Source: Macrostomum lignano (taxonomy: Eukaryota). Taken from it: a DNA stretch of 64,000 bases. The DNA lies in NCBI GenBank assembly GCA_002269645.1, contig NIVC01000139.1, positions 62,001 to 126,000 of the forward strand, read 5' to 3'. A model generated the notes under the pieces. It saw only the letters and a program-made list of their open reading frames with translations, was not told where the DNA came from and searched no databases. Shown here one piece after another: positions 28,949-64,000 of the stretch (its first letter is position 1; each line of letters opens with the position of its first letter). The position numbers and the translations under genes were made by a program.

Positions 28949-29624
28949 TAGCTTTTGTCCATGGTAGCAAGGCTTGCATTTTATTTGGTCCAACAAGCAT
29001 CAATTGGTCCATATAGCTTCATTTGCAACTGCTACGGAGCAAGCTTAGCCCCAGAATTGTGGACCATGTGCTAGGCTGTCAAACGAATGCCATTGGCTTG
29101 TGATCGAAACACTCGACGGAGGTGAACATCCAAAGGACATTGCAAGGTTGCTGAATGTAAAAGAAATGATGGTTTACAGCATCCATCAGCGCGTTGAAAC
29201 TCCGCCGGCAGAGATTGCGTGCGAAAGGGTGGCAATCACCAAGGCAAGTTGCTCAAGAGCCTCAGGTCCAACTGCTACTCGATGCAGTTGAGACGAACCC
29301 TTTGTTAATATTGCAGAAAATGCAGCAGAAGTTGAAGGAATAGTTCCAGTTAGTTATCAGATTTAGACTATCAGCAGAGCTCTGGAAAAGCGACTGAAAA
29401 TTGTTGCTAGAGACGCTGAAATTCCAGTGGGACGCAACAACCTGCAGACAGTTGCGAGAAGGCAGGAGTTTGTCTAACGGCTCACGAGCATTTAGACCAT
29501 TTTGATACGTGTAGAACCAAATTAAATGCCGCTCTGTCAGCCTTGTTACGAGCTATCATAGACAAAAGCTCCGTTACATAGGCAAACCTATCTTGAATTA
29601 AATTCAATGGGCTGCAAAAATCTA
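28949..29624 (+). mobile_element. Degenerate IS630-Tc1-type remnant
   Basis: TA-flanked TAGC(T/A)TTTT-type ends. HTH MIETLDGGEHPKDIARLLNVKE and LLDAVETNP...QKMQQKL are homologous to the transposase at 4643-5710. A second copy lies at 63745-64000. Confidence 0.7.
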
Positions 29625-39225: not shown

Positions 39226-41759
39226 ACATTTATAGTACAATTGATTACTTACATCATTAAATCATTCAGTAAAATGCATTAATATAGAACATAACCACAA
39301 AGGTAGCAACAAATCAGAATGCAAGAGACAAGTGCTCAGTGCATTGTGGATGTGGCAAATTTTTAGAAACCATGATGTGGCAATGATAGTCAGCTATTTA
39401 TTATTAGGGTATAAAAAGTCTAATTCACTCAAAGAAATTTATAAAACTTTTTCTTGATTCTACAAATTTAACTCTATTCTACAAAGTTTGAGCAGTTGTT
39501 TTTAATTGATCACATACCTACCTACCCACATATCTATGGATAGACCATTTTTAGTATATAGACTAAACTTTTTTTTTAGAGGCAAGGGGGTTGTGTGCAC
39601 CCTGGCGCACTTTAAGCAACATAGGCACACAACCGGCGAGAGGCATTACTGCCCATTCTGCCGACTCCCCTGAGCAGGCATACAAGCGCGCGGATAGGCC
39701 TACGTTATGCAGGCACACACTCACACAGGAGTGTACAGCGGCCCTAACTTTATCAATTGTTAGGCATGTACACTTCACTGCGCCTTGGGGGGTTGGCTCT
39801 CAAGGCCATTAATTGCACAAGCGAGCCAAGCCGAAATTCCAATTCAGCCCCAAATTAATGTGGCTGCACTTGGAATCGAGCCTGGGTTGCGGCACACTAG
39901 AGCAGCTGCGCTACCGCTGGGCTATGGCCCCCCTTAGACTAAACTTTAATGTTATAACTATTTTAGGCAAATTTTATATGCCAAAACAAAATATGAAAAC
40001 ACAATAAAAATATTGTAAGTTAGCCGCTTAGCCCTATAACTATTATATATTACTGCATGTTTTGTAAGCCCTAGGCTGAGCAAACAATTTACAAACAAAA
40101 GTTAATTATTAAATATAATTATATAGATAAAAGATAGGCCTACTAATATCTGAATAAGGCCTATTATTTCAGTTTATTTGGTTCATTCTAATTTTCTAAT
40201 TCTCTAGTCTAGATAAAGCTCTAAAAAGTGCATGCATGCTATACTTCTTTGAAGACACAGCAACAAAGCCAAACGTGCCAGCTTGCCCTAACTAAGCACG
40301 ATTTTTTTTTACTTTTCAAGGATCCATTCGCCTTTCCTAATGATGATCGATCTAACTCGATTCTAAAAAACAAAGCTAGTCATTGTACACTGTACGTATG
40401 AAACATTCGCCGACACTTATTCAGACACTTCTACAGACACTTTATTTTCTGTCGTACGGTTAGGAACAAGCATTAAATTTGTCTAGGACACTTCCTAATT
40501 CATATTTAATGAAATAAAGCAGTCCATGCATAGTTTTAATTTTGCAATTTTGTTTTTGTGCACTCGTTCCAGACTTTCAAATTATGGCTTTTATCGCGTA
40601 GTGTGCGTGCATGCATCGTGTACAACGATTAGCTGCAGCGTGCTAAATAGTTCAATTAGGTATTAAAAGCGTACAAGGTATTTGTACAATAGTATTTGTA
40701 CATTTTAGTTGAAGTTAAAAGTTCAAGCTTTTAGTGAATCATTGGAAAATAAAACTATCCGTTTTAAATCGTGCAACATATTGTTTTGTCTCGGACATTT
40801 GTGACACTGTCACTTAGGGTTGCAAGGTTTTTTAAAAGAGAAACTGTTGCTTTTCCAATGCTGAAGTATTTGTGTTGTATGGATCAGGGTTTTTCGTCAA
40901 AATTTGGATGCATGTATACATCTAAACATATAAAAATGATCAAGGTTGAAGATTACCCTATGGTATAACTGTTTTCTCCATTTTACTATTTCAAAGTGCC
41001 CACGTGAAGTTAGATTTAGCATGCCAGCCTTAAAAAATAAAAAAATCTACATAGTGTAGAATTGTATACTCTTTTATTTAAGACTATATTATATTCCCAA
41101 TATATTTGCTTAGATAAATCGAAAAGTATTTACTTTACTTGAAAAAAATAATGTTCACTACAAATATTTCAATGTAGAAACCAGGAAACATAAACCTATC
41201 AAGTGTTATATAGAAATGAAGGATAAAGATATGGATAGAATACAATAAAGCCATTGTGGGCATTAAATATAAAACAAAAGAATCACTTAAGGCAAAATTT
41301 GAAAAAAGTGAATTTTTGGCATGCTCCAAGAAAAGAGGCTTATAATTTGAAATATTTTTGCTTTTGTTTGACAAAAAATATGTATAGATTTATACTTTTG
41401 GGCAAGGTTTATTTTCTCTTAAAATTCTAATTGTAAATTTGCCAGTAAGCTTAAAAATTGTTGTAAGTTGAAGCTCAAATAAAATTAGTCTTAACTCCAA
41501 TCTGACTTTCCAAAGTAAATCCCTAAATTATTTGTTACAATTGCTTTAAAAACTTGCCATTTCATTTATTCATTAATCAAAATTTTGTTCTAGAAACTGA
41601 TACCTATAGAAGGTTTTTAGTTTTTAAGAAATCTAGTAACTAGTGTCAGAGAAATATGTTTATGTAGGTTTTATATATATATATCAACCTTATATATAAA
41701 AAAGGTTGCACACTGAGATTTAAATACAGCTTCTAACATGTGTGTCCAGAGGTGAGATT

Positions 41760-44625
41760 GTGGCCAACTGCACACCAATAGCATACCAACTCTATACCAA
41801 ATCCATACTGACATGCCAACTGTATACCAACTGTATACAAACACCATATCAACTCCATACCAACTGCATACCAACCCCATACCAATATGCCAACTGCATA
41901 CCAACTCCATACCAATATGCCAACTGCATACCAACTCCATACCAACATGCCAACTGCATACCAACTACATACCAACATGCCAACTGCATACCAACACCAT
42001 ACCAACTCCATACCAACTGCATACCAACTGCATACCAACTCCATACCAACTACATACCAACATGCCAACTGCATACCAACACCATACCAACTCCATACCA
42101 ACTGCATACCAACTCCATACCAACTATACTCCAACATGCCAACTGTATACCTACACCATACCAACTGTATGCCAACTGCATACCAACTCCATACCAACAT
42201 GCCAACTGCATACCAACTCCATACCAACATGCCAACTGCATACCAACTACATACCAACATGCCAACTGCATACCAACACCATACCAACTCCATACCAACT
42301 GCATACCAACTGCATACCAACTCTATACCAACTACATACCAACATGCCAACTGCATACCAACACCATACCAACTCCATACCAACTGCATACCAACTCCAT
42401 ACCAACTATACTCCAACATGCCAACTGTATACCTACACCATACCAACTGTATGCCAACTGCATACCAACTCCATACCAACATGCCAACTGCATACCAACT
42501 CCATACCAACTGCATACCAACTCCATACCAACATGCCAACTGCATACCAACTCCATACCAACTGCATACCAACTACATACCAACATGCCAACTGCATACC
42601 AACACCATACCAACTCCATACCAACTACATACCAACATGCCAACTGCATACCAACACCATACCAACTGCATACCAACTCCATACCAACATGCCAACTGCA
42701 TACCAACTCCATACCAACATGCCAACTGCATACCAACTACATACCAACATGCCAACTGCATACCAACACCATACCAACTCCATACCAACTGCATACCAAC
42801 TGCATACCAACTCCATACCAACTACATACCAACATGCCAACTGCATACCAACACCATACCAACTCCATACCAACTGCATACCAACTCCATACCAACTATA
42901 CTCCAACATGCCAACTGTATACCTACACCATACCAACTGTATGCCAACTGCATACCAACTCCATACCAACATGCCAACTGCATACCAACTCCATACCAAC
43001 ATGCCAACTGCATACCAACTCCATACCAACATGCCAACTGCATACCAACTACATACCAACTGCATACCAACTACATACCAACATGCCAACTGCATACCAA
43101 CACCATACCAACTCCATACCAACTACATACCAACATGCCAACTGCATACCAACACCATACCAACTGCATACCAACTCCATACCAACATGCCAACTGCATA
43201 CCAACTACATACCAACATGCCAACTGCATACCAACACCATACCAACTCCATACCAACTGCATACCAACTCCATACCAACTATACTCCAACATGCCAACTG
43301 TATACCTACACCATACCAACTGTATGCCAACTGCATACCAACTCCATACCAACATGCCAACTGCATACCAACTCCATACCAACTGCATACCAACTCCATA
43401 CCAACATGCCAACTGCATACCAACTCCATACCAACTGCATACCAACTACATACCAACATGCCAACTGCATACCAACACCATACCAACTCCATACCAACTA
43501 CATACCAACATGCCAACTGCATACCAACACCATACCAACTGCATACCAACTCCATACCAACATGCCAACTGCATACCAACTACATACCAACATGCCAACT
43601 GCATACCAACACCATACCAACTCCATACCAACTGCATACCAACTGCATACCAACTCCATACCAACTACATACCAACATGCCAACTGCATACCAACACCAT
43701 ACCAACTCCATACCAACTGCATACCAACTCCATACCAACTATACTCCAACATGCCAACTGTATACCTACACCATACCAACTGTATGCCAACTGCATACCA
43801 ACTCCATACCAACATGCCAACTGCATACCAACTCCATACCAACATGCCAACTGCATACCAACTCCATACCAACATGCCAACTGCATACCAACTACATACC
43901 AACTGCATACCAACTACATACCAACATGCCAACTGCATACCAACACCATACCAACTCCATACCAACTACATACCAACATGCCAACTGCATACCAACACCA
44001 TACCAACTGCATACCAACTCCATACCAACATGCCAACTGCATACCAACTACATACCAACATGCCAACTGCATACCAACACCATACCAACTCCATACCAAC
44101 TGCATACCAACTCCATACCAACTACATACCAACATGCCAACTGCATACCAACACCATACCAACTCCATACCAACTGCATACCAACTCCATACCAACTATA
44201 CTCCAACATGCCAACTGTATACCTACACCATACCAACTGTATGCCAACTGCATACCAACTCCATACCAACATGCCAACTGCATACCAACTACATACCAAC
44301 ATGCCAACTGCATACCAACACCATACCAACTCCATACCAACTGCATACCAACTGCATACCAACTCCATACCAACTACATACCAACATGCCAACTGCATAC
44401 CAACACCATACCAACTCCATACCAACTGCATACCAACTGCATACCAACTCCATACCAACTATATTCCAACATGCCAACTGTATACCTACACCATACCAAC
44501 TGTATGCCAACTGCATACCAACTCCATACCAACATGCCAACTGCATACCAACTCCATACCAACTCCATACCAACATGCCAACTGCATACCAACTCCATAC
44601 CAACATACTAACTACATACCAACAT
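41760..44625 (+). repeat. CCAAC-core minisatellite array in the left TIR (about 2.9 kb)
   Basis: Variant 8-11-bp units: CCAACTGCATA, CCAACTCCATA, CCAACTACATA, CCAACACCATA, CCAACATG. Confidence 0.95.
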
Positions 44626-44701
44626 GACAACTTATATTATGCCACACTAAACGAAAACATGGCAAATTCATACCATTGTTTCATGTTTCAGGCTTCTTTG
44701 C

Positions 44702-47179
44702 ATGGCAGCGAAGAAAAGTGTGAACGACACTTCTGAAGCCATTAGCGGTGACCATTCAGGTGCTGCTGGTGCACAAGTTTTTTCTGCTGGAGGTTTTTTT
44801 GTGGAATCATGCATATCAACTAATCTCTTCGTGAATCACTTTGATACAAGAACTTGTAAACTTAAGCCTTCTTGGTTGGATCAAGTCATTTATCCACTGT
44901 TAAGACAGCATGGTGAGTATTGTCAGTTCTCAGTTAATAAGGTTAGACTGCGTGCATTTAAGCGCCATAGGAAGGACTGCAGTTTTCTTTGGATGCGCCT
45001 AGTCTGTGCCGAAGGCTCTGGTTGCAGTATGGCATTCGTCGTCACCTTAAACAAGGCGCCGACTGATGGGCAGTCCTCTACACTGACGCTACGAAGAATC
45101 TCAGAGCACTCGGGGCATGATGTTCCATCAAGTTGTTCCTCTTATCGCTATCTGTTGCAACGAGGTTCACAAGAGTGCCGTAACTTTGTTTTATCTCAGG
45201 CCACCAACCCTGCTGCCAAGCCAACGCAGATCTATGTGAAAGCAATCGAGCTGTTTGGTAGCGAAGCATGCTCTCTATCTGCTGTCCGTACAACTGTTAG
45301 TCGGACAAAAGCTGCCGACGACAAGTCTCCAGACGACATAAGAGATTTAAGACTCCAAATGAAAGACTGGAAGTTGACTATAAACGAGGATGGAGTCATT
45401 AGCGGCTATATCCAAAAGATTGACGTTGCACCAGTTAGTGTGATTCTCCATACCTCCATGCAGTTGGATTTGCTTCGCGACGTGCTGAAAGGCAATCAGC
45501 TTGCTCCTCTCCACTTAGACGCCACCGGCGGAATTGTGCGACAGACCCAGAACGTGCCGAGCACTGTACTTCTGTGCAGTGCTGTTGTTGCAACCCCGGA
45601 TATAAAGAGAACAGCTGTATCAGAAAGCATCATGGAGGTCACGCGCTCGGAAAATGTGTCCAGTTGGCTAATGCATTTTTTAGCAGATTTCGCTCGTCAC
45701 TGCAACATAGGACTGTGGGAACTACCCAAGAAAGGTCCGCAAATCTACGTGTCTGACTTTAGCTGGGTTTTCATTCATGGTATTCTCCGAGCCGCATGCA
45801 CGACCTGTGTTACAGACTACCTGCGTGTACAGTACAATCGACTTCGGAGTGCTGATCTGAAGCCACCTGAATCTCCTGTTGTGTTTATCTGTAGCTCGCA
45901 TTTGCTGCGCGCTGTTGCCAGGACTTTGAAGTCACCAGATAAAATCGATAAGGTTACTTATCGCGAGTTCATGCTCTCTTTTGCACTATTAGTGACGTCG
46001 AAAACTTTGCGTTGCGCCCAAGCTGTTTGGAAGGCAATGGTCGAGGTGTTTACCTCCAGGCGGGTAAATCCTGCCACTTTGAAGGCTTTACAAATTCTAC
46101 ATGGTAGGTTCGACTTCAGTTCGTTGGAGATTCCTGATGAAAACCAAGTGGCTGAAGATTCTGCTAATGTCTCAAATGCAGTGCAAGAAGACGTCGCATT
46201 GGCTGAATTGGAGACTGGACTACGAGCCTCATCACCTTTTGCGAAGTACTTCAACGATTTGACAAGCGAAGTGACAGCAAGCGATGGCAATGGCGTGCTG
46301 AACAATCTTTTCTACCCTCAGGCTGTTCAGGTTGTATTGCGAAAGTGGATGCCACTGTTTCCTCTTTGGAGTGTGGCAGTGTTTGGAGGAAATCGTAGCG
46401 CACACGTGACCAACGCCGCTGTTGAATCATGGTTCAGCTGGTGCAAAAGCGAAGCACTGCCTTCTCCAAGTTCTCGGCTCAGGTTACCAAGATTTGTCCG
46501 TGCGCAACTAACAACCGTAAAACTGCAACTGAAGCGGTTGCAGCACGAGCAACATCCAATTCGCCCCCCAAAGCGTGCTAGAGGACGCAAATGTGGCTTT
46601 GATGCTCCGTTAAACCCACCTGGAGATCCCTGGAAAAGGTCAGGAGCCTCAAAAAGACGAAGAACCAGCTTCATTCAATCGGCATTATCAATTCCGCCAG
46701 CCGTTGCACCCACGACCTGTACTCTAGCTGCGCCTGCTGCAAGTGGGTCTCGCTTGGGCAGCCAGCCCGTCATTGTCCAGGTTCGGCCTGCTATTGCACC
46801 CACGACCTGTACTCTAGCTGCGCCTGCTGCAAGTGGGTCTCGCTCGGGCAGCCAGCCCGTCATTGTCCAGGTTCGGCCTGCTATTGCACCCACGACCTGT
46901 ACTCTAGCTGCGCCTGCTGCAAGTGGGTCTCGCTGGGGCAGCCAGCCCGTCATTGTCCAGGTTCGGCCTGCTATTGCACCCACGACCTGTACACTAGCTG
47001 CGCCTGCTGCAAGTGGGTCTCGCTGGGGCAGCCAGCCCGTCATTGTCCAGGTTCGGCCTGCTATTGCACCCACGACCTGTACACTAGCTGCGCCTGCTGC
47101 AAGTGGGTCTCGCTCGGGCATTTCACCTGCACCAACAGCACAGAATACCACCTGTCACAGCCTACCAGATGAGCAAATT
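44702..47179 (+). CDS. MULE/NOF-like DDE transposase (first exon of a putative transposase-USP fusion)
   Basis: LHLDATGG (D1), YVSDFSW (D2), FICSSH (CxxH) and AVESWF (E), uninterrupted. It ends in 30-aa repeats and a phase-0 donor ATT|gtgagt at 47180; the unspliced ORF stops at 47308. Confidence 0.85.
46702..47119 (+). repeat. 90-bp coding tandem repeat (about 4.6 x 30 aa, IAPTTCTLAAPAASGSRxGSQPVIVQVRPA)
   Basis: ttgcacccacg recurs at 46704, 46794, 46884, 46974 and 47064. Confidence 0.92.
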
Positions 47180-47715
47180 GTGAGTGATGAAATTGCATTT
47201 TTTCAGTTTAGAAATACCTTCAGTCAACCCTTGTATTGGTTTACGTATTGTGTATGCGCCGTACACTCACTCCGCCACAATTTGCGTCTCCCACTAGATC
47301 TGTCGTAGTAATGTATGTGCCATGTCTCAGCAACTTGTGGGTAAGGTGCAACCTTATCAATCAACTCTCTTTGTAGGCCTCCTCCGTCTCGACTGGCACA
47401 GGTATTTATATTGCACAATCCAACATGTTCCGTATGATGCACGTCTCTGTTACGTGATTGTTCTCTGATTAGAGATCTAAAGTTTATGATTCTATCATTT
47501 TTTTGCTTTTCGTGTCACCGATTATGCCCTTTTAAGTTTTACTAATTTCCATGAATTAGCATTCAACATGTTGCTTTCCATAAGTATTTGTACTTTTAAG
47601 TTTCGTTTCTTTTGCTTACGTCGAGGCGCCATTTTTTGTTGTTAAATGGATGTGACTGGGCTGTTCACTGGGACATTTTGATGGTAAATTCGTTCCTAAC
47701 CGCCAATTTTATTAG

Positions 47716-48796
47716 GACGCGCCGACACTGCAGTGTCATTTCCTGCACTATCGCCACGGTCGCCAGAGGGGCTACCGAATCCGACGGGCACGTATTGTGC
47801 TTTCAATGCCGCCAGTCAATGCTTGGTTGCAACATTAACGAGCGCACTATCGTGTGATGCAGATTCACCACTTGCATTGTTCCTTAACTGCCTAATGACA
47901 GGCAAAGACGTTCTGTTGCTGCATTCAGCCGCGTTTCAGTGGTGCAGTAAAGCATTTCATATGGATCCTATGGCACAAAACTGTGCCTTAGAGTTTCTGA
48001 CCGGAATGCTGTTTCTTTCTGAGCTCAAACTGCGATTCAGCTGCGAGGTAAGGGTGAACGGTTTATTAAGTTTATGACTATTTAAATGCGTTTTAGTAAA
48101 GTGATTTAAGCCTGCATCCTGAATCTAAATTTATTTGTAAGTTACCTTCGAAGACAGTATATACTTTGCTGGAAGGCAAAGAATACCTTTCAATCGCGCT
48201 TCCACTGTGTGTTGGTCTTCACAGTTGCACCATGAGTACTGTTCCTATCCATCTTTTTTATTTCGTAGATTTCTACAACTTTGAGTTGTTCCGCCTGTTT
48301 CAAAGTGACACGACTGCTACCTAGAGACACGGCAACTATTCTACGTTTATCAATTCCTGATCACGACGACTCGCTTGATTTCCCGGCACTCATTAGACAG
48401 TCACTGTTTTCTACTCAAGACCACACCGACATCCGTTGTCCGACTTGCGACGTCGGGGGGTGCAGCTATGCACAAACACTTGCAACAACGTCGGAGCACA
48501 TATGCATGGGAATTAGCCGAGTCTCTGTCAAGCGCAGAAAGGGACAAACTGTACTATTCGAGAAGAACACTAAAGTTGTACCCATCGAGATGAAGCTTAC
48601 TTTGAGTGGCAGAAGCTACAAGCTTCGTGCAGCCATCGTTCACATTGGTAGTCGCGTGAATAGTGGTCACTATATTGCATACGTATTCTGTGGCCGCACT
48701 AGCTACTGTGTCAGTGATTTGACTGTACGAAAAGTATCTTTGTCAGCGGCATTCAATGACGTGAAGCGAAACTGCTGCGCTCTTTTTTACGGCTAA
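47716..48796 (+). CDS. Ubiquitin-specific protease (C19/USP)-like domain, exons 47716-48047 and 48269-48796
   Basis: Cys box GLPNPTGTYCAFNAASQCL, QNCALEFL, Zn-ribbon CSAC...CPTCDVGGC, His box YKLRAAIVHIGSRVNSGHYIAYV, then VSDLTV and CALFY. Phase-0 intron GAG|gtaagg...tttcgtag|ATT. Confidence 0.8.
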
Positions 48797-49638
48797 CGTG
48801 CTGGTGATCTCCGTGTTATTAACATAATGTGGACGGTTTACTTATTTTCTTGAGTTTATTCGTGTTTGTAATGGTCTCATGCCGTTGAAAGTATAAATTC
48901 ATAACTGATGATCGTGCTGTGTAATGTATTTATAACAAAAACTTTTAACTGTGTTGAAAAGGTCTACATATATACATGTACGGATTTGCATTTTATAGTT
49001 TACCGCCATTTTAATTCTCTATTTTTCTGTATGCGCTAAAAGCTGGGACTAAACGCCGTTAGTAAACCGTTTAGACAACGTGAGTTCTAAAACTTATAGT
49101 GTCAACTATATACTCTTTTCTTGCAGCTAAATACTCTCCATTTGAGTATAATCGTAATTGTTTTTGGCCTGTGAAACCTGTACACCTGTCACTTATCACT
49201 TAGGCCAATAAATGTCACAAAAGAAAAAATTGTTCAACGAAATACGTGCCATGAAACATTCCTTTGCTTTATTTATCCGAAAGAATTTATTTCAACACAA
49301 GGACTGACAACTAATACGGGTAAAGGAAATGAAACTGTTCAAATATAAGTATAAACTACAATTAATCGTTCAAGGAAGTATAGATTAAAAACCACATAAG
49401 ATACTTGTCTCATAGTTACTACTACGCTGAAGTCATTCAACTACATACTTTGTTGCAATGAAAATTGTTGCATGGTACAATAGATAAGCCAATAAGCTAT
49501 ACGAACGGTATGACTTTGTTTAATGCTCGAATACCAGCGTTCTTATTTTCGTGCAAAAGAAGCTGGCAAACTCGCATAACGAACTCGCAAACTGAACAGA
49601 CACGCATCCGATATTCCGTCACGCATCATCCTAGTCTG

Positions 49639-50778
49639 TTACTCATGCCTCGTTCGCGAGCGCAATGACATCGCTGGTTGGACCGACCTTAAAGATCTCT
49701 GGGGCCTCTGCGATCTCCGACGCATTGGTTTTAGTGGTCCAAGAGCGGGACACTCGTACTGTTGGGACTGCCGCTGTTCATCCAGCTCGAGCTGCCGCTG
49801 CTCCTCTGGCAGTGCGAGTTGCCGTTGGCCGTCCTGTATCTGCGGATGCCGCTGTTCATCCAGCTCGAGCTGCCGCGGCTCCTCCTGCAATGCGAGTTGC
49901 CGTTGGCCGTCCTGTATCTGCGGATGCCGCTGTTCATCCAGCTCGAGCTGCCGCGGCTCCTCCTGCAGTGCGAGTTGCCGTTGGCCGTCCTGTATCTGCG
50001 GATGCCGCTGTTCATCCAGCTCGAGCTGCCGCGGCTCCTCCTGCAGTGCGAGTTGCCGTTGGCCGTCCTGTATCTGCGGATGCCGCTGTTCATCCAGCTC
50101 GAGCTGCCGCGGCTCCTGCAGTGCGAGTTGCCGTTGGCCGTCCTGTATCTGCGGATGCCGCTGTTCATCCAGCTCGAGATGCCGCTGCTCGTCTTGCAGC
50201 GCGTGCTGCCGCTGCTCCTCATCAGTTGGGCGTGATCGCCGCTGCATGAAACGCCGACGGTGCACAGTCGATTGTAGCTGACTGAAGCCGCGCGAGACAA
50301 CGAGCAGAGAACGAAGAACAGACACATCACATGAAGAAATAAGGAGCCGAAAGCTCTGCAAAACTTGCTTCCGCAGTCGCTTTGAACTTTGAAAATGGTG
50401 ACCCGGAACCTCTCGACGTAGGACAACTGACTGCGTCAGATGTGGCTTAGTTACACGCTGCAGCCAAGCAATGCCATTACCACGGTGGTCTTTGTTTCCA
50501 CAACCATATACACCGTGCAAAAATGCAACCTTGCTAGGATCGGTTATTAATTGGACAACAGACACTCGATCACGTCCGCACCTACGAAATCCGTCTCGCA
50601 CACGGATATTAGAATGATTAAATGAACGTGTGCAAACGCAAAGCCTCTGGCAAACCGACTGAATCGATAGTTCATCGCTGTTGTTGAACGTCACAATGAC
50701 AGGAAGAGAAGGGCATGGTAGGACCGCACCTACACAAGGCAGAACAGCATCTGGTGGGCCTTGTAATAACTGGTCCAT
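49639..50778 (-). CDS. Second MULE ORF, convergent with the transposase, with Gln/Glu-rich 26-aa repeats; function unknown
   Basis: 379-aa ORF beginning just inside the right TIR, in a mudrB-like position. The repeat region is open in several frames, so the coding frame is uncertain. Confidence 0.45.
   Translation of the reverse strand: MDQLLQGPPDAVLPCVGAVLPCPSLPVIVTFNNSDELSIQSVCQRLCVCTRSFNHSNIRVRDGFRRCGRDRVSVVQLITDPSKVAFLHGVYGCGNKDHRGNGIAWLQRVTKPHLTQSVVLRREVPGHHFQSSKRLRKQVLQSFRLLISSCDVSVLRSLLVVSRGFSQLQSTVHRRRFMQRRSRPTDEEQRQHALQDEQRHLELDEQRHPQIQDGQRQLALQEPRQLELDEQRHPQIQDGQRQLALQEEPRQLELDEQRHPQIQDGQRQLALQEEPRQLELDEQRHPQIQDGQRQLALQEEPRQLELDEQRHPQIQDGQRQLALPEEQRQLELDEQRQSQQYECPALGPLKPMRRRSQRPQRSLRSVQPAMSLRSRTRHE
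49770..50220. repeat. 78-bp tandem repeat (about 5.7 copies)
   Basis: gccgctgttcatccagctcgag recurs at 49770, 49848, 49926, 50004, 50082 and 50157. Confidence 0.92.
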
Positions 50779-50904
50779 GCATATGGAAGAGTGCGATTTT
50801 AGTCATCAAAAGAGTCAGGAAAGATGGCAACATGGCAGAAGTATCCCAAGAGTTGTACAAAAAGAGAACCTAAAAGTTCCTACGAGTCTCGCAATTTAAC
50901 ATTC

Positions 50905-51930
50905 TTGGTATGGAGTTGGCATGCAGTTGGCATGTTGGTATGGAGTTGGTATGCAGTTGGTATGCAGTTGGTATGCAGTTGGCATACAGTTGGTATGGAG
51001 TTGGTATGCAGTTGGTATGCAGTTGGTATGCAGTTGGTATGCAGTTGGCATACAGTTGGTATGGTGTTGGTATACAGTTGGCATGTTGGAATATAGTTGG
51101 TATGGAGTTGGTATGCAGTTGGTATGCAGTTGGTATGCAGTTGGTATGCAGTTGGTATGGAGTTGGTATGCAGTTGGCATGTTGGTATGGAGTTGGTATG
51201 TAGTTGGTATGCAGTTGGTATGGTGTTGGTATGCAGTTGGCATGTTTGTATGGAGTTGGTATGGAGTTGGTATGCAGTTGGTATGGAGTTGGTATGCAGT
51301 TGGCATGTTGGTATGGAGTTGGTATGCAGTTGGCATGCAGTTGGTATGGTGTTGGTATGCAGTTGGCATGTTGGTATGTAGTTGGTATGCAGTTGGTATG
51401 GAGTTGGTATGGTGTTGGTATGCAGTTGGCATGTTGGTATGTAGTTGGTATGCAGTTGGCATGTTGGTATGGAGTTGGTATGCAGTTGGCATGTTGGTAT
51501 GGAGTTGGTATGCAGTTGGCATACAGTTGGTATGGTGTAGGTATACAGTTGGCATGTTGGAGTATAGTTGGTATGGAGTTGGTATGCAGTTGGTATGGAG
51601 TTGGTATGGTGTTGGTATGCAGTTGGCATGTTGGTATGTAGTTGGTATGGAGTTGGTATGCAGTTGGTATGCAGTTGGTATGGAGTTGGTATGGTGTTGG
51701 TATGCAGTTGGCATGTTGGTATGTAGTTGGTATGCAGTTGGCATGTTGGTATGGAGTTGGTATGCAGTTGGCATATTGGTATGGAGTTGGTATGCAGTTG
51801 GCATATTGGTATGGGGTTGGTATGCAGTTGGTATGGAGTTGATATGGTGTTTGTATACAGTTGGTATACAGTTGGCATGTCAGTATGGATTTGGTATAGA
51901 GTTGGTATGCTATTGGTGTGCAGTTGGCCA
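50905..51930 (-). repeat. Inverted CCAAC-core minisatellite array in the right TIR (about 1.0 kb)
   Basis: Reverse complement of the left array, but shorter. Confidence 0.95.
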
Positions 51931-53689
51931 CAATCTCACCTCTGGACACACATGTTAGAAGCTGTATTTAAATCTCAGTGTGCAACCTTTTTTATATATA
52001 AGGTTGATATATATATATAAAACCTACATAAACATATTTCTCTGACACTAGTTACTAGATTTCTTAAAAACTAAAAACCTTCTATAGGTATCAGTTTCTA
52101 GAACAAAATTTTGATTAATGAATAAATGAAATGGCAAGTTTTTAAAGCAATTGTAACAAATAATTTAGGGATTTACTTTGGAAAGTCAGATTGGAGTTAA
52201 GACTAATTTTATTTGAGCTTCAACTTACAACAATTTTTAAGCTTACTGGCAAATTTACAATTAGAATTTTAAGAGAAAATAAACCTTGCCCAAAAGTATA
52301 AATCTATACATATTTTTTGTCAAACAAAAGCAAAAATATTTCAAATTATAAGCCTCTTTTCTTGGAGCATGCCAAAAATTCACTTTTTTCAAATTTTGCC
52401 TTAAGTGATTCTTTTGTTTTATATTTAATGCCCACAATGGCTTTATTGTATTCTATCCATATCTTTATCCTTCATTTCTATATAACACTTGATAGGTTTA
52501 TGTTTCCTGGTTTCTACATTGAAATATTTGTAGTGAACATTATTTTTTTCAAGTAAAGTAAATACTTTTCGATTTATCTAAGCAAATATATTGGGAATAT
52601 AATATAGTCTTAAATAAAAGAGTATACAATTCTACACTATGTAGATTTTTTTATTTTTTAAGGCTGGCATGCTAAATCTAACTTCACGTGGGCACTTTGA
52701 AATAGTAAAATGGAGAAAACAGTTATACCATAGGGTAATCTTCAACCTTGATCATTTTTATATGTTTAGATGTATACATGCATCCAAATTTTGACGAAAA
52801 ACCCTGATCCATACAACACAAATACTTCAGCATTGGAAAAGCAACAGTTTCTCTTTTAAAAAACCTTGCAACCCTAAGTGACAGTGTCACAAATGTCCGA
52901 GACAAAACAATATGTTGCACGATTTAAAACGGATAGTTTTATTTTCCAATGATTCACTAAAAGCTTGAACTTTTAACTTCAACTAAAATGTACAAATACT
53001 ATTGTACAAATACCTTGTACGCTTTTAATACCTAATTGAACTATTTAGCACGCTGCAGCTAATCGTTGTACACGATGCATGCACGCACACTACGCGATAA
53101 AAGCCATAATTTGAAAGTCTGGAACGAGTGCACAAAAACAAAATTGCAAAATTAAAACTATGCATGGACTGCTTTATTTCATTAAATATGAATTAGGAAG
53201 TGTCCTAGACAAATTTAATGCTTGTTCCTAACCGTACGACAGAAAATAAAGTGTCTGTAGAAGTGTCTGAATAAGTGTCGGCGAATGTTTCATACGTGTA
53301 CACTGTTCATGGAAAATGTAAACTTATGACGCATGTATGAATAAAAGAGTTTAACAAAGACTCTTTTTATACTATAAACAGAAGGCCTGTCTCTATATCA
53401 ATTTAGAAATGGTTCGTCGAATTTGGTCTATAAGATAGCTTTATTTTTGTTACAACTAAGGTATTTTTTTAACACCGGATGCACGGGTTCACAAAAAAAT
53501 TAATCTATCGCGTTTAAGAAGCACATTTTTTGTCCCTAGCAAGTCGCGACGAGCAGAATTAGTTTCCAGCCTTGAAAACTTTAGGAATTCCGTGTTTTAG
53601 CGTTTGCAGTAATTAACTTTGAACGTGCTACTAAATTTATTTGCAACGAGTCTATCAAGACAAGAGACCAAGTGCCAATTTACAAAAAC

Positions 53690-57272: not shown

Positions 57273-58926
57273 ATGGCGACAAGCAAGGCAACCTCAGCAA
57301 CCGGCAGTAGATTGGCAGGTGCAACTGGCAAAGCCTCTGCTAAATCTCAGCGCGCGTCGACAACTGTATCAACTGTGCGCAGTGGAGAGGTCACAGAAAA
57401 AGGTCATATCTCAGTTTTTTTCTTTAAGGTTTTATAGTAAATATGCTAAAGCAGTTGCTTATGAAAAAAATGATATGCATATATGCATAATATTATGTAC
57501 TATTTCAGTGACGAAATCCCCAACATAAAACATTTCATTTTCAAGGATTACAAAAAATCATTTGATCCATTGTACAGCTAGATAGCGTCCTATATAAATG
57601 TTACTTGAGTAAGTCCTTGTAGCGTACATGTGCGTGTTCACGTTGAGTTATCAGGTTGAAATTAAACTATAGAAAACCACACCAACTTATATTATACAGC
57701 ACTCAGGGAGACCTTTATCCAACTAAGCACCAAAAAGAGCGGTTTGCTGCCACTGAATCTGATTGGCGTCGCGCTGCGCTTAAATAACCAGTGTCCCACG
57801 GAAGCGGAGCTCAGAAAAATCATGGCTGAACACCAGCGTGAAGATGATGCTGACCCAGGTCTGAAGCGATCTAACTTAAGGCTAAATTTCTTCGACGCTG
57901 TGAAACTAAATCAAATTGCTCTTACAAAATTAATTTCAGCTTCTGTTCCAGCAATTGACTTTGAAGAGTTCTGCGTCATAATGCGAGATAACTGGAGAAG
58001 CAGAGATCTACTGTTAGAAGAGATCTCAGCTGCTTTGAGCACCTTCGACAAAGGAGAAACGGGAGTGATCGGGGCAGACGAGATGAGGATGCGGTTGATG
58101 AGTCTTGGAGAAGTGCTTGATGAAGCTGAAATCACCGAGCTGTTGAAAGACGCCAACGTAAATGAGGGAAACATTGCATATACAAGTAAGATACTAAACT
58201 TTTTTTGAAATTTTAAAAAGTTTTTGATATTCCAAATGCTGTTGTCACAAAGTTGAGATTCATCTTAACGCATAGATCTTCGCTGAAATCTAGGCTCGTA
58301 ATTTAGCTGTGTTTGAAAAAACTCATGAGAAACTTTTATTAATAAATAAAAAAGAAAGAGAAGGGGTTAAGGGGACAAGCAAAATTAAGCTAGAGCTAAA
58401 ATGGCAAAATGGCAAAGTTATTTTTGGTTTATTGCTTTTATTGCTTCTGTGTGGCATCTAAGATCGAACTGTGCATTATTAAAAGCTCGAGATGCTAAAT
58501 AATAAAAAATATTCCTGATCTTTCCATAATCGATGGGGGCCATTCCTGAAAATTACGAACCCTTTGCTACGATAGGCTAGATGCTCGTAGATAGGCTACG
58601 GCTTTCTTGAATTATGGTACACTGCTTGTGCTTGTATCCCATGGAACCATTGAAATTATACTCGACGCTGCAGTTATAACTGTCCTTTTTATATTCTAAA
58701 ATCTCTTAGTAAGTTACTCACTGAGTATTATTCACTGGCAGCTCCTTACTTTTCTTTTTCTCCATATTAATTTTAACTGGGGAAAACATTTATCATTAAT
58801 TTGCTAGGTCTGGCCACACTACTGCTAGATGCCTACAGCCGGCCCTCGTCGATAAAGTCAGGAAAGAAGAAGGGAAACGCCTCCGCGAGAAGCGTAAAAA
58901 GCAAAAAAAATGAAAGTTTAAACTGA
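57273..58926 (+). CDS. Divergent calmodulin/myosin-light-chain-like EF-hand protein (4 exons, about 217 aa)
   Basis: Exons 57273-57402, 57700-57858, 57940-58185 and 58808-58926, with compatible phases. Motifs LRETF...QCPTEAELRKIM, IDFEEFCVIM, FDKGETGVIGADEMRMRLMSLGEVLDEAEI. The first and last exons are less certain. Confidence 0.7.
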
Positions 58927-59289: not shown

Positions 59290-60420
59290 TTCAAAGACCT
59301 AAAAACTCGGCTGCCCAACTTACGTGACTTAGCATCCGGATACAGCAGCTGGGAGGCTTCGCCGCCCATTCCGCTAACCTCTGGCGACCACAAGCAGCTA
59401 GTTCTACGGTTTCGCGGATAACTCCTGGGTGTCGGGAGATCCGGTGGTGCCGGTGTCCGCAGCGAGATCCCCCTCCGGAGGAGTCCAAGGGGTGGATGGT
59501 CGCTCGCCCTTGGGTAGCGTACGAGCTTTTAGATTCTCGGACCTGAAAGAGATCCAGGTTTGGGCCTAGGTAGGTGAGCCTGTCATTCACAGATGAAGTC
59601 CTCCGCATTCTCGAGAGACAGAATGGGCATTCCTCGCTACGGATTTTTCCTTGGAGGTGACGATGCCTGGCAAAACAGCCATGTCCTGAGAGGGCCATGG
59701 TCACCGCCCTGATGTCCCTCCGGTTAAGTCCAAGCAGGGCCCTGCGGAGGGCGGGGGAAGCCCGCGCGAGATTGGTGGCAGTCGGGGGGCGTTAGCCCAC
59801 CTTTCCCTGAGCTTTGAAGCCACCCATAGGTTAATCCAAGTGGCGACAACGGCGGTTGGGGTGGGGACCACGGGCAGGGGACCAGAAAAAAACCGGTCAA
59901 GATAGCCTTGGCCAGGCGATCGGCCAACTAGTTGCCAGGGTGGCCCGAGTGCCCGAGAATCCACCTTGAGAATACCATGTTGGACCTTAGAAGCGGTTAA
60001 GCTGCCCGCTGAAGTCGGGGATGGTGCGCCAGCAGTAGATGGTAGTGCGCTGAATGGCGAGAATCGCCGCTTGACTGTCCGAGTGGAGGGTAATCTCCTT
60101 CCACCAGACACGCCGATTGTACAGCTCCATGGCGCAGGATCTGATGGCGAGAACTTTGTTCTGGAAAAGGGTAAAGGGTGTGCTGGGAGAAGGACGCCAG
60201 GGTTCTTCTTCCATCCACAATGCAGTAGCCGTAACCAGAGGCGGAGTTGATTTGGGACCCGTTAGTGAAGCAGTGGATTTCATGGGGTTTCCAGCTGTCC
60301 TTTGCTTCGTGAAGTGGTGGAATGCTGGTTTTGAATCCAAGCGGAGAGCAGAGCGGGGACGGGATTCCATCTGAGAGGGTCAGTAAACCTCCAGCTGCCT
60401 CCAGGTCTCCCAGGCGGAGC
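59290..60420 (-). mobile_element. Degenerate non-LTR retrotransposon 3' part (RNase H plus C-terminal Zn finger)
   Basis: IHCFTNGS, TLFQNKVLAI, ITLHSDSQAAILAI and LSGHGCFARH...ECPFC. Confidence 0.75.
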
Positions 60421-60694
60421 TTGACGAGCGGCCGGAGGTTCTGATTTCTGAAGGCGAACTGCTTCTGGATGACGACACCCGCGTGGATTGCTGGATTGCT
60501 GGATAAGAAAATTTTTGGAATGCAATGCTTGCAGCAAAATGCTCACTGCGGATCGGACTGCGGTACTTCCATCCAACTGAAGTGGCATCCAAATGCTTTG
60601 GCAGGTCTTGTGCTGCGTTTGTGTTGTGCAGGGATCGAGATGGTAGAGAAAATGTTTCAGCAACAAATCACGACTTTTCTGCACCAGAGTCAAA

Positions 60695-63399
60695 GGGGAT
60701 GTCAACTTAAGCACCAGAATGGAGAAGTTCAGCTCCGGACCAAACCGACTGCAATCGATAACTTGTCGGCCTGGACGACTAGAATCGCCGAGACATCCCA
60801 TCCGGGTCCCTTCCTTGGGGTCCCAGGGGATAAAGGGGATAAAATGGGGATCTCATGTCAACTTAAGGCTCTGGAATGGAGCCTGAAGTTCAGCTCCGGA
60901 CCAAACCGACTGCAATCGATAACTTGTCGTCCCAGACGACTAGAATCGCCGAGACATCCGCTATGTCATTTAGTGCTGCTTTGCTGCCATTAAGCAGGAC
61001 AAATGTGTTAACGAGAGGCACAAACCATATCAGTGGCTGCAGTCAACCGGCTTCAGCGAGCGCATCAGATTAGGCGTTGTTATTGAGAACTCGATGGCAA
61101 AGTACAACCGGGCGCATCCAGGTTTTGAATCACTTAAACAGCTGCCACCGTCATGGACAGGGCTATCGTTGTTCGAATTCGGTCAGAATTTCATGCGCCG
61201 AGTGCTCTTGTCCAACGAACTGGACGAAATTGAGCAGCTACGCTTTAACTGTGATCTGACGTATGTCCCCCTTCTAACACAAGGGCATGGATTTTCCGAA
61301 AACCCGCTGGATCCAAAAAGCTCGGAGTTCCCCCGAATTCACACAGAATTTGACAGAGGTTTCGGTGGGTCCGTATCAACTAAATCAAGCCGATGATTAC
61401 ATTCAAAACATTCGTGTCAAAGAGGTTCTCGGTAGCTACGAAGGTGACTCCTGGAGAGACTTTGAGTCGCTCACATCCGAACTTCCGAGCCACCTGAAGT
61501 GTTGGAAGTTTCGGCAAGAGACGCAGCCAGAAAACTGAAGCAACCGATTCGGTCGGTAGCATCCGTCTTGGATTTTTCTAGCTGTCGTTTTCTCGCGCCA
61601 TAATTCGAAATCCTACCGCGTGATTCTTAGAGTGTGTGACAGCAGCGGATAATCGCTTTGGTTTTAGAGATCCAGGATTGCAACTTCTTCATGGCTACTA
61701 CTCGTCAGCAAAAGCTGGAAGTAGAACTGCAGGCTGCGATTGTCATGTAATGGCAGTGCTCAAACTCCTGGGCTGCTATGCTTACCACCAAGAGATAGCT
61801 ATCGAAGGTCTGGTGCTAGCCTTCGCTTTGTTGATTCCGCTCTTCCACGCAGCCTTGTTGCCAGTCTTTATGCCAGAGAAAATGCTTTACCACAGCAGCG
61901 AAAGCCTACTGAGCAACAGTCTAGCGGCCAGCAAGAGGAGTTTCAGTCAGCCAGCAGCAGCTCACGATCCAAGCCTCAGTCTTCAAGAGTCTTTGGTCTT
62001 CAAAACCATGGTCAGCAGTGCTACGCAACTGTTTTTGCACTGTTTCACTGCATCAGCAGCAAAGTCCAGCTCTTTCAGCCGGTCAGAGGTGGGGCAGTGA
62101 ACACCGCAATGACCAACCTGATAACGTCTATGGCGACTTGAGCAAGCGTAGATCAACTTGTCGAAGCTATCCGAAGCCGATATCCGCAGCAGTTTGCGCC
62201 AAGACAGCAACAATGCATGAACGAGCTACTACAGTGCATTCTGCCAGATTTTCAGCTGCAGCGTCATTGCCTAATCGAATTTACACTCGTACGTGCGGTA
62301 GTTGCCTGACTAGCACGGATGAGCTACCCATAGGAGTTCTGGATTATCGTATCCTCAGCATCTCCTTGCAGGAGTTTTCAACCTCACTGTTAACTCTAGA
62401 CGGTCTCTACGCTGCTTTTACGGCACCAAAGCACGTCCCATGCACCAACACCAACTGTGCAGCTGATAGTGTGCAGGGGGATCAGGTCTCTAACGGCAGA
62501 GTGACCCTGATGCATATAGATCGCATTGGAACCGATGGTCAAAAACTGAATACACAAGTCTGGTGGACAAGCCGAGCAGGTAACATCTCCAGCTTGGGAT
62601 GTCCAATATTCACAGTGTCCCATTACGGTAGTACGCCCTTGGAAGGGCACTATACATCTTGTGTCCTGAAAGATGGAGTATAGAATAAGCTGGACGACAT
62701 GAGAGTTCAAAGAAACTACAATCCATTCGTTCATGAGCAATCTTTTATTACCTTAGTAGCCCTGCTGCAAGTATAAAGAGACCCATGGGATCATCTGCGA
62801 GCATGTTTACACTATAACCCTTTCTGCAAACTAATAACCATACTGCTTCATTTCGTTTAAAAAAAGCATCCGGAGCTGAACTTCGGGCTCCATTCCAGAG
62901 CCTTAAGTTGACATGAGATCCCCATTTTATCCCCTTTATCCCCTGGGACCCCAAGGGAGGGACCGGGATGGGATGTCTCGGCGATTCTAGTCGTCCAGGC
63001 CGACAAGTTATCGATTGCAGTCGGTTTGGTCCGGAGCTGAACTTCGGGCTCCATTCCAGAGCCTTAAGTTGACATGAGATCCCCATTTTATCCCCTTTAT
63101 CCCCTGGGACCCCAAGGGAGGGACCGGGATGGGATGTCTCGGCGATTCTAGTCGTCCAGGCCGACAAGTTATCGATTGCAGTCGGTTTGGTCCGGAGCTG
63201 AACTTCGGGCTCCATTCCAGAGCCTTAAGTTGACATGAGATCCCCATTTTATCCCCTTTATCCCCTGGGACCCCAAGGAAGGGACCGGGATGGGATGTCT
63301 CGGCGATTCTTGTCGTCCAGGCCGACAAGTTATCGATTGCAGTCGGTTTGGTCCGGAGCTGAACTTCGGGCTCCATTTTGATGCTAAGTTGACATCCCC
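60695..63399 (+). mobile_element. Foldback-like DNA transposon with 161-bp tandem-repeat TIRs, a PHIS/DDE_Tnp_4-like transposase and SWIM remnant, and a USP remnant
   Basis: AAA|GGGGATGTCAAC...GTTGACATCCCC|TTT. Left arm about 1.6 units, right arm about 3.3 units. Internal RIRLGVVIEN, EFPRI...VGPYQLNQADDY, SRHNSKSYRVIL and KAGSRTAGCDCHVMAVL, followed by USP boxes. Confidence 0.75.
61975..62765 (+). pseudogene. Decayed USP/C19 deubiquitinase domain
   Basis: GLQNHGQQCYA (Cys box), FAPRQQQCMNELL, TCGSC...CTNTNC, VSHYGSTPLEGHYTSCV (His box), and V*NKLDDMRV (TAG where Trp is expected), with premature stops and a frameshift. Confidence 0.72.
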
Positions 63400-63744
63400 T
63401 TTCCGTTCTCCTTCAGGATGCGTTCTGCGTTGCGGAAGTTCGACTGCCTTCCTGCAAGATCCACAGCGATTCCCTGTGGAAGAAGCTGACGACCAAGTTC
63501 ACACAAGTGCGACTGCATCACTGTTGCAGACTGCAGACTCAACAGTTCGATGCAGCCTAGTCTAAAACTGAAGCCTGTCGAAAGTAAAATAAACTTTAAT
63601 TAAGCATTAAACTGCCGCTAAAACAAAAGCCAACCAACTTCTCCGTGGAGAGTCCACATATTTCTCAGCTAGGAATGTTTTCTTAGCGAATCATAGCTCC
63701 TTTTTCGATTTCGAATGAAAGCTCAAAATCCACTAGAGAATATA

Positions 63745-64000
63745 TAGCATTTTGCAGCCCATTTGGGCTTACGCGCATTTAATTTAATCCAAGATACGTT
63801 TGCCAATGTAACAGAGCAGTTGGACCTGAGGCTCTCGAGCAACTTTCCTTGGCGATTGCCACCCTTTCGAATCCCCTTTCGAGAGTTTCAACGCGCTGCT
63901 GGATGCTGTAAGCCACCTTTTCTTTTACATTCAGCAACCTTGCAATGTCCTTTGGGTGTTCACCTCCGTCGAGTGCTTCGATCACAAGCCAATGACATTC
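63745..64000 (-). mobile_element. IS630-Tc1-type remnant (same family as 28949-29624), runs off the window
   Basis: TA|TAGCATTTTGC end; MIEALDGGEHPKDIARLLNVKE. Confidence 0.7.

Follow-up and report, generated by a model that had tools for sequence, protein, structure and literature searches.

A decayed Spy-like DNA transposon of Macrostomum lignano with the remnant of a ubiquitin-specific protease in its transposase gene

A complete transposon at positions 60695 to 63399

The window analysed here is a stretch of 64,000 nucleotides of repeat-rich nuclear DNA of the flatworm Macrostomum lignano (assembly GCA_002269645.1, contig NIVC01000139.1, positions 62,001 to 126,000); the fetched locus L001 of this assembly agrees with it in every letter, also in the flanks. 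Close to its right end, positions 60695 to 63399 form a complete DNA transposon of 2,705 bp, whose first base is G60695 and whose last base is C63399, precisely the boundaries given in an earlier note that was made from the letters of the window. Between its inverted ends the element carries the broken remains of a transposase gene, followed by the remnant of a ubiquitin-specific protease (USP, peptidase C19). The features are listed below in window coordinates; protein relatives are cited as P and fetched loci as L, each with a number.

60692–60694, no strand: AAA, left half of the AAA/TTT target; host sequence, not duplicated
60695–60959, plus: left terminal inverted repeat, consisting of the terminal motif GGGGATGTCAACTTA and 1.6 copies of a 161-bp subterminal unit
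60959–61375, plus: transposase remnant, frame 1, beginning at the catalytic-Glu motif of the DDE domain
61359–61652, plus: remnant of the transposase C-terminal domain, frame 2
61645–61800, plus: degenerate Cys/His finger region (HGYYSSAKAGSRTAGCDCHVMAVLKLLG), frame 3, with frameshifts at ~61645–61652 and 61794–61800
61794–61994, plus: conserved transposase tail (DSYRRSGASLRFVDSALPRSLVASL), then a low-complexity linker to the USP; the same tail occurs in P0007 and in relatives without a USP
61995–62776, plus: USP (peptidase C19) remnant, natural stop at 62774–62776
61995–62027, plus: Cys box GLQNHGQQCYA, catalytic Cys codon at 62019–62021
62193–62231, plus: QQC box FAPRQQQCMNELL, with Cys in place of Asp at 62214–62216
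62288–62314 and 62435–62467, plus: zinc-ribbon motifs CxxC and Cx4C of the USP remnant
62618–62659, plus: His box SHYGSTPLEGHYTS, which includes EGHYTS
62693–62698, plus: DD box, within KLDDMRV (62687–62707)
62869–63399, minus: right terminal inverted repeat, consisting of 3.2 copies of the 161-bp unit (62869–63377) and the terminal motif
63400–63402, no strand: TTT, right half of the AAA/TTT target; host flank

The left and right arms of the element are 94–98% complementary, and the 161-bp units on the right are 99–100% identical among themselves. Within the window the terminal 13-mer GGATGTCAACTTA is confined to the two termini of this element, and its shorter version ATGTCAACTTAAG occurs once per 161-bp unit, twice on the left (60699 and 60855) and three times on the right (62902, 63063 and 63224), with the terminal variant at 63385–63397. 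A motif repeated in each subterminal unit is the usual layout of transposase-binding sites, and the repeated terminal motifs found here (two left, four right) are probably such sites. No direct repeat of 2–10 bp flanks the element under either reading of its boundary, and no paralogous empty site was found in the window and the fetched loci.

Insertion between AAA and TTT, with nothing duplicated, defines the Spy group of the PHIS superfamily, whose transposases are IS5/PIF-like (PMC4122938); the other PHIS groups generate duplications of AT, TWA or CWG (PMC4482050). The one complete copy lies between AAA at 60692–60694 and TTT at 63400–63402, and a 50%-identical relative on locus L011 has the same terminal 13-mer preceded by AAA, its ends being otherwise not alignable. 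ISL2EU (AT duplication), PIF/Harbinger (TWA) and Nuwa (CWG) were ruled out as the identity of the element because there is no target-site duplication. The relationship to IS5/PIF-Harbinger/ISL2EU DDE transposases is seen through the relatives; the window copy itself retains the Glu motif only. By its target site and the Pfam family of its relatives, not by a tree, the element is classified as a Spy-like PHIS cut-and-paste transposon. The earlier note had likewise called it PHIS-type, in agreement with the insertion between AAA and TTT without duplication and with the DDE_Tnp_4 and HTH_Tnp_4 matches of the relatives.

The described Spy elements (PMC4122938; cgSpy, PMC11304231) resemble the present one in their cut-and-paste nature, in inverted ends of variable and sometimes long length, in an IS5/PIF-Harbinger-type transposase, in a single transposase gene without a Myb-like second open reading frame (ORF), and in AAA/TTT insertion without duplication. 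Published Spy transposases contain a DNA-binding and a DDE domain within 500–700 aa; their hosts are arthropods, molluscs, cnidarians and rotifers, whereas the present element is from a flatworm. Furthermore, the descriptions of Spy and PHIS elements (PMC4122938, PMC11304231, PMC4482050) contain no zinc finger downstream of the DDE domain and mention no ubiquitin protease, whereas both are present in this family. The ends differ as well, being tandem 161-bp subrepeats here, whereas no subrepeat structure was seen for Spy of PMC4122938.

The insertion is hosted by a degraded non-LTR (long terminal repeat) retrotransposon on the minus strand (59290–60694 and 63400–63560), with stretches resembling RNase H (HSDSQAAILAIQ) and, at the C-terminus, the typical LSGHGCF...CPFC motif. 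In silico excision of the element yields an open frame of more than 150 codons over the junction on the minus strand, a candidate retrotransposon frame.

The decayed transposase gene, its USP domain and their relatives

The N-terminal part of the gene, comprising zinc fingers, helix-turn-helix (HTH) and both catalytic Asp residues, is deleted right up to the left repeat array. At the Glu motif the window reads RYVI*CCFAAIKQ (asterisk, stop codon) versus FAVECTFAAIKQ in P0004, the Glu codon having become TAG (60971–60973). A frameshift at ~61352–61388 separates frames 1 and 2, and frame 2 is interrupted by TGA (61536–61538) and TAG (61557–61559), at both of which P0006 has Trp, as well as by TAA (61650–61652). 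The USP remnant is broken by TGA (62139–62141), by a frameshift at ~62288–62309 and by TAG (62681–62683). Altogether the coding remnant carries at least four frameshifts (~61352–61388, 61645–61652, 61794–61800 and 62288–62309) and six in-frame stops (TAG 60971, TGA 61536, TAG 61557, TAA 61650, TGA 62139 and TAG 62681). The frameshift which the earlier note had placed near 61790 is real, the reading frame switching between 61794 and 61800. Because both catalytic Asp residues are gone, the Glu codon is a stop, and frameshifts and stops are numerous, the copy is read from its sequence as a dead, non-autonomous, internally deleted Spy-like transposon which encodes nothing functional. At most, it would be mobilised in trans via its repeated terminal motifs.

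The Trp codon after ...QPEN is TGA in the window (61536–61538) and also in the 50%-diverged L011 (~2583–2585), where P0004 ends; P0006 and all other relatives have Trp at this position. The shared TGA could reflect two independent TGG-to-TGA changes or a shared feature, for example read-through separating a short transposase from a finger-USP extension.

Relatives were collected by an exhaustive phmmer search against 1.84 billion representatives, resulting in 28 matches. A word-indexed search with the remnant returned M. lignano self-matches only, including P0001, a mispredicted gene model on another copy. P0004 (560 aa, 50% identical, encoded on L011) covers the transposase part and ends at the TGA of the window, and P0007 (362 aa) contains the tail of the finger region and the entire USP in one frame. 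L011 overlaps at its 3' end with the start of P0007, and therefore P0004 and P0007 are pieces of one family. P0013 is a single ORF of 1,048 aa which unites transposase, finger and a UCH domain (47.2 bits).

No Pfam match to DDE_Tnp_4 or SWIM was obtained from the window copy itself, so that both labels, which the earlier note had used for this remnant, rest on the relatives. For DDE_Tnp_4 they hold: P0014 reaches 32.4 bits (cut-off 24.8), P0011 and P0059 reach 20–22 bits, and the homology to DDE_Tnp_4-type transposases upstream of the USP spans ~300 aa. P0004 and P0017 match HTH_Tnp_4 with 19–21 bits, below the cut-off, and several relatives begin with C2H2 fingers. The SWIM profile (PF04434), on the other hand, was never reached, with a best score among relatives of 16.4 bits (P0009) versus a cut-off of 19.6, and the CxCxnCxH signature is incomplete in the window; the finger is SWIM-like at best. 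The finger of the relatives has the form C-x2-4-C-x9-C-[CD]-x-H, and in the window it reads YYSSAKAGSRTAGCDCH, the first Cys pair being missing. The stretch YSS.KAGSRTAGCDCH is present in the window (61690–61760) and in L011 (~2740–2800), in both of which the first Cys pair is lost; all other relatives keep it. Since it is missing from both, the loss is a trait of the Macrostomum-type lineage and not the decay of one copy, and the finger of this lineage may be non-functional or differently liganded. Assembled from the relatives, the full-length gene would encode C2H2 fingers, HTH_Tnp_4, a DDE_Tnp_4-type domain, a long C-terminal domain, the SWIM-like Cys/His finger and the conserved tail.

The four USP peptides quoted in the earlier note were all found, at 61995–62027, 62193–62231, 62618–62659 and 62687–62707. 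After frame correction the USP remnant matches Pfam UCH (PF00443) with E=6e-4 and 19.9 bits, which stays below the gathering cut-off of 23.9, and the parts upstream match nothing. As the remnant alone is sub-threshold, its C19 identity, which the earlier note had made depend on a profile search, is settled by the relatives: against the intact P0007 the remnant scores 140 bits at 35% identity, and P0007 in turn scores 55.2 bits against UCH. The catalytic Cys, His and Asp/Asn boxes stand in canonical order in the remnant and align with those of P0007, USP2 and USP15; with its broken frame the remnant is no active enzyme. Canonical host USPs (human USP2, USP15 and USP12) and the Spy-type USPs share the Cys box, a QQD-type box with Gln and Glu, two zinc-ribbon Cys pairs, the His box and the Asp/Asn box, in the same order. 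They differ in the QQD box, where canonical host USPs have Asp and the Macrostomum-type Spy domains Cys; moreover, these domains have diverged strongly, scoring at most 33 bits against any solved USP, and, unlike canonical host USPs, are fused to a transposase. Because P0007 spans the finger tail and the USP in one frame and P0013 is a single ORF, the comparison supports a genuine USP remnant that is part of the transposase gene. The single transposase-SWIM-USP ORF, for which the earlier note had proposed to look, is borne out at the family level by P0013, its finger being only SWIM-like.

Across the relatives a C-terminal in-frame USP is confined to two lineages of the Spy-like transposase family. 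Twelve relatives end 42–81 aa past the finger without a USP, P0015 and P0018, which are sisters of P0013 (100% neighbour-joining bootstrap), lack one, and no USP was found in any frame of L004–L007 (Tara Oceans family). By this distribution the USP is a lineage-specific addition to the Spy-like transposase.

The complete ends of intact relatives were sought in L003, L004–L007 and L132 and not found, the contigs breaking in subterminal repeats. The only candidate in L132 flanked by AAA/TTT was rejected, its match of 10/12 being expected by chance, and the terminal 14-mer gave at least 120 chance matches in metagenome contigs, none of which encodes a related transposase. In the P0013-type marine-metagenome lineage an ORF of 580–592 aa lies immediately upstream (L003 202–1944; L008 115–1893); it contains C2H2 fingers and long acidic Asp/Gly/Asn/Pro repeats and corresponds to an N-terminal extension inside the single ORF of P0017, P0020 and P0023. 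Several M. lignano gene models are chimeric on transposon fragments, namely P0001, P0005 and P0060, i.e. UniProt A0A1I8IYQ6 ('DUF3480 domain-containing'), UPI0007A1D47C (2,393 aa) and A0A1I8HZW9 ('SPARK domain-containing'). A0A1I8IYQ6 and UPI0007A1D47C include translated subterminal repeats of the Spy-like family, and A0A1I8HZW9 is part of the USP of the Mutator-like element described below; the UniProt 'genes' A0A1I8IYQ6 and A0A1I8HZW9 are thereby revealed as transposon fragments.

A Mutator-like element with a USP in the same window

The earlier note had described the Spy-like element as a second, unrelated transposon with a USP, the other one being a Mutator-like element (MULE) upstream in the window. 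The features of the latter are as follows.

40385–40393 and 53298–53306: perfect 9-bp target-site duplication GTACACTGT
40394–53297, plus: Mutator-like comparison element, 12.9 kb, with inverted ends and target-site duplication
40394–~44624 and 50905–53297: inverted repeats, at least 2.4 kb long, 96% over 2.4 kb
44702–47308: transposase ORF, 868 aa, 100% identical to M. lignano BOX15_Mlig004567g1
~47733–48050 and ~48281–48796: USP exons, QNCALEFL at ~47976, downstream of the transposase stop codon

Satellite arrays lie inside the inverted ends (41.7–44.6 kb and 50.9–52.0 kb). The 868-aa transposase has no Pfam match, and its D...D...CxxH...E pattern was read by eye; the second USP exon scores 33.2 bits against UCH. 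A second copy on another contig (L002 6319–18580) is 99.97% identical over 6.3 kb and has different flanks with an 8-bp duplication, TTATTAAT. The USP frame is intact in the window and carries one frame-disrupting indel in the L002 copy. Duplications of 9 and 8 bp, within the ~8–11 bp of Mutator elements, together with kilobase-long inverted ends identify the element as Mutator-like, and because the 99.97%-identical copy sits at a different locus with its own duplication, the sequence marks it as young and recently mobile. The description as unrelated is sustained, since tblastn with the proteins of the Spy-like element found nothing in 40394–53297. A word-indexed search with the MULE USP returned M. 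lignano self-matches only, with no detectable family.

Both transposon-borne USPs carry Cys at the Asp position of the QQD box, as the earlier note had stated. HMMER aligned QQHC of P0007 onto NQQD of human USP2, and MAFFT placed QQQC of the window, QQHC of P0007, RQNC of P0008, EQHC of P0010 and AQNC of the MULE USP in one column, where P0013 has Glu or Ala, depending on gap placement. In the window the conserved Asp is thus replaced by Cys (62214–62216) with Gln and Glu kept. A decay mutation of the dead copy was ruled out as the source of this Cys, because three other family members share it: it is kept in 4/4 Macrostomum-type Spy USPs, which are only 33–35% identical to each other. The QQD box is a conserved feature of the USP family outside the catalytic triad. 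It lines the channel for the ubiquitin C-terminal tail; there the Gly-Gly tail is covered by the Gln of the box, and Arg72 of ubiquitin forms a pair with the Glu of the box (PMC6231127, PMC8983731). A short QQD-box query against the PDB, intended to tabulate the Asp across USPs, returned no matches.

In order to compare the USPs, pairwise HMMER bit scores were determined for solved human USPs and the transposon USPs. P0007 scores 32.6 bits with USP2, 31.2 with USP15, 5.6 with the MULE USP and 12.0 with the P0013 USP. For the MULE USP the values are 16.7 (USP12), 15.0 (USP25), 13.8 (P0008) and 6.3 (P0007), and for the P0013 USP 21.7 (USP15), 20.4 (USP5) and 12.6 (P0007). Evidently, each transposon USP reaches its highest scores with human USPs and lower ones with the other transposon USPs, and the two window domains gave no significant direct BLASTP match. 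In its Cys box the MULE USP has an extra residue (GLPNPTGTYC; N-x5-C versus N-x4-C), and its second zinc-ribbon motif is CxxC, versus Cx4C in the Macrostomum-type Spy USPs. A transposon-specific USP clade spanning two superfamilies, as proposed in the earlier note, is not supported by the pairwise scores, the Cys-box spacing and the zinc-ribbon motif; in the pairwise comparison the two domains are not closer to each other than to host-type USPs. A grouping with different host USPs, which the same note had named as evidence against its clade, is weakly indicated, P0007 scoring best with USP2 and the MULE USP with USP12, both being human. Of the two options that had been offered, double capture with convergent change is the better reading on the pairwise scores.

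The Spy-family and MULE USPs were thus most likely acquired independently. Because the transposon USPs show no closer kinship among themselves than with ordinary USPs and the USP is an exception in the Spy-like family, several independent additions are the simplest reading. Since independent acquisition is most likely, the shared Cys is most likely convergence or coincidence, and not evidence of a shared transposon-specific clade.

Further observations concern the neighbourhood. An ORF of 379 aa lies within the MULE on the minus strand (49639–50778), opposite to the transposase; it contains tandem repeats (QLELDEQRHPQIQDGQRQLALQEE) with a faint Pfam match and may be a second MULE gene or a repeat-driven ORF. 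The C-terminus of the MULE transposase (46690–47150) comprises five tandem 30-aa units (PAIAPTTCTLAAPAASGSR.GSQPVIVQVR) just before the USP exon region. A calmodulin-like EF-hand ORF on the plus strand (57744–58208), whose Pfam EF-hand matches are all sub-threshold, is probably an exon of a host gene. A stretch of 84–91 bp at 63815–63898, overlapping a minus-strand ORF (63779–63985), recurs inverted at 29187–29276 with 83.5% identity and constitutes a dispersed repeat.

Possible function, rival explanations and significance

All USP lineages in the alignment retain the catalytic Cys, His and Asp/Asn. In the P0013 cluster, most of whose 20 members are intact at 1,048–1,050 aa, three copies gave ratios of nonsynonymous to synonymous substitution rates (dN/dS) of 0.16 for the transposase and 0.42–0.47 for the USP (one-sided binomial p ~0.01–0.03 vs neutrality). 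Because the catalytic residues are kept and purifying selection acts, the USP of the active relatives is most likely a working deubiquitinase, less strongly constrained than the transposase. It would be supplied in cis, joined to the transposase, and would most likely strip ubiquitin from the transposase or the transpososome. This would shield the transposase from proteasomal turnover and prolong its life, or would spare it the ubiquitin-dependent processing where the element is excised or integrated and dampen such responses at the break; alternatively, the substrate might be ubiquitin on local chromatin. The anti-silencing role suggested in the earlier note is one possibility among several and is pure inference.

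USPs are the largest family of deubiquitinases. Proteases of the ubiquitin and SUMO systems are familiar companions of transposition enzymes; Zisupton, for example, combines a SWIM finger with Ulp1. We know of no transposon USP whose activity has been demonstrated, nor of an established role of ubiquitin/SUMO proteases for transposons. Ulp1 has been found in MULEs and Ginger1, OTU in Ginger1 and Helitrons (PMC2836005), and VTD in Helentrons (PMC9741609), and it was proposed that these domains protect transposition proteins or manipulate repair (PMC2836005, PMC9741609). Such elements resemble the present family in that a thiol protease of the ubiquitin/SUMO system lies C-terminal to or beside the transposition enzyme and is patchy among related elements; they differ in their folds, which are C48, C85 and VTD, whereas the present family has a USP (C19). 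An IS5-like transposase fused to peptidase C19 was noted in Trichomonas vaginalis (XP_001314237.1; PMC2836005, citing Gladyshev and Arkhipova 2009), and the same work already proposed a wide involvement of the ubiquitin pathway in transposition. By description, on which the comparison is based, the T. vaginalis protein likewise combines a DDE transposase of the IS4/IS5 kind (transposase_11) with a USP/C19, but it belongs to a protist, its transposase is PF01609 and not PF13359, and no finger is described.

Taken as a whole, the explanation which we consider probable is that of a dead Spy-like deletion derivative from a USP-fused family, whose USP was captured independently of that of the MULE and acts in cis as a deubiquitinase. 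A different origin of the two USPs would be a single transposon-adapted lineage, marked by the Cys, which moved between Mutator-like and Spy-like elements, or the descent of both from one Cys-bearing Macrostomum paralogue, with subsequent divergence. In accordance with a common origin, the Cys occupies the same normally-Asp position in two USPs of the same genome, identity to P0007 in the alignment is slightly higher for the MULE USP (25%) than for the P0013 USP (20%), BLASTP of the MULE USP against P0008 gave E=6e-4 over 188 aa, and both are too divergent for database searches to reach host relatives. The mutual phmmer scores of 5.6–13.8 bits are nevertheless no better, and mostly worse, than those against human USPs; the BLASTP result for the two window domains and the differing Cys-box and zinc-ribbon spacings speak against it as well, and within the same transposase family the USP of the P0013 lineage lacks the Cys, so that we regard a common origin as unlikely. 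A more far-reaching idea is that the Cys-for-Asp USPs form a transposon-adapted class of deubiquitinases with altered tail recognition or regulation, exchanged or convergent among flatworm Mutator-like and Spy-like elements, which would serve counter-defence by stabilising the transposase or by erasing a restraining ubiquitin mark of the host; this we hold to be a decidedly speculative proposition with little chance of being correct.

Both USPs might also be passively captured fragments of host genes (transduplication, as in Pack-MULEs) with no role in transposition, their likeness being incidental. The MULE USP follows the transposase stop codon, has its own intron and is tied to the transposase by no transcript evidence, and a USP is missing from most relatives of the Spy-like transposase, all of which would fit. 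Against this, transposase and USP share one reading frame in two divergent Spy-like lineages, the catalytic residues of the USP are kept across sequences 33–35% identical, its dN/dS of 0.42–0.47 is significantly below 1, and the MULE USP frame is intact in the window copy, with the single indel confined to the second copy; passive capture therefore appears very unlikely. That a decayed host USP gene merely chanced to lie between repeats, without any transposon, finds nothing in its favour beyond the presence of the USP remnant itself, whereas the repeats on either side pair perfectly as inverted terminal arrays, the ~300 aa upstream are homologous to DDE_Tnp_4-type transposases, and other copies of the family have been absorbed into M. 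lignano gene models (P0001, P0005); its probability is practically negligible.

Several points weigh against the dead, USP-fused Spy-like element with an independently captured USP as we describe it. Membership in Spy stands on one complete copy and one left end; without an empty site, AAA and TTT could formally be part of the repeat, which would still leave no duplication. The termini GGGGATGT (window) and GAGGATGT (L011) start with G and are out of register with the Spy consensus 5'-GGANNNNG-3', which GGGGATGT does not match exactly. Pairwise HMMER scores are not a phylogeny, the comparison set consisted of solved human USPs and transposon USPs, and all three transposon USPs are very divergent, so that long branches could conceal shared descent. 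It is also a strange coincidence that one genome contains two transposon USPs with Cys where Asp is normally invariant. Finally, the dN/dS values come from the marine-metagenome lineage and not from the Macrostomum lineage, and a structure of the P0007 USP predicted with AlphaFold2 from six aligned sequences (pLDDT, the model's confidence score, 40.9) was unusable.

The window copy itself is an ordinary dead transposon, and the theme of transposases accompanied by Ulp1, OTU, VTD or C19 is already known; new here are that a Spy-like element of a metazoan carries a USP, that this recurs, and that Cys takes the place of Asp. Assays of deubiquitination and transposition could start from the intact relatives, whose 1,048-aa ORF is under selection, and from the young M. 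lignano MULE, and the Asp-to-Cys change offers a simple mutational test. One genome contains a Mutator-like and a Spy-like element each with a USP. Seen together with the marine-metagenome lineage and the T. vaginalis protein, this suggests that transposons recruited USPs repeatedly and independently, as would be expected if deubiquitination were of real advantage to them.

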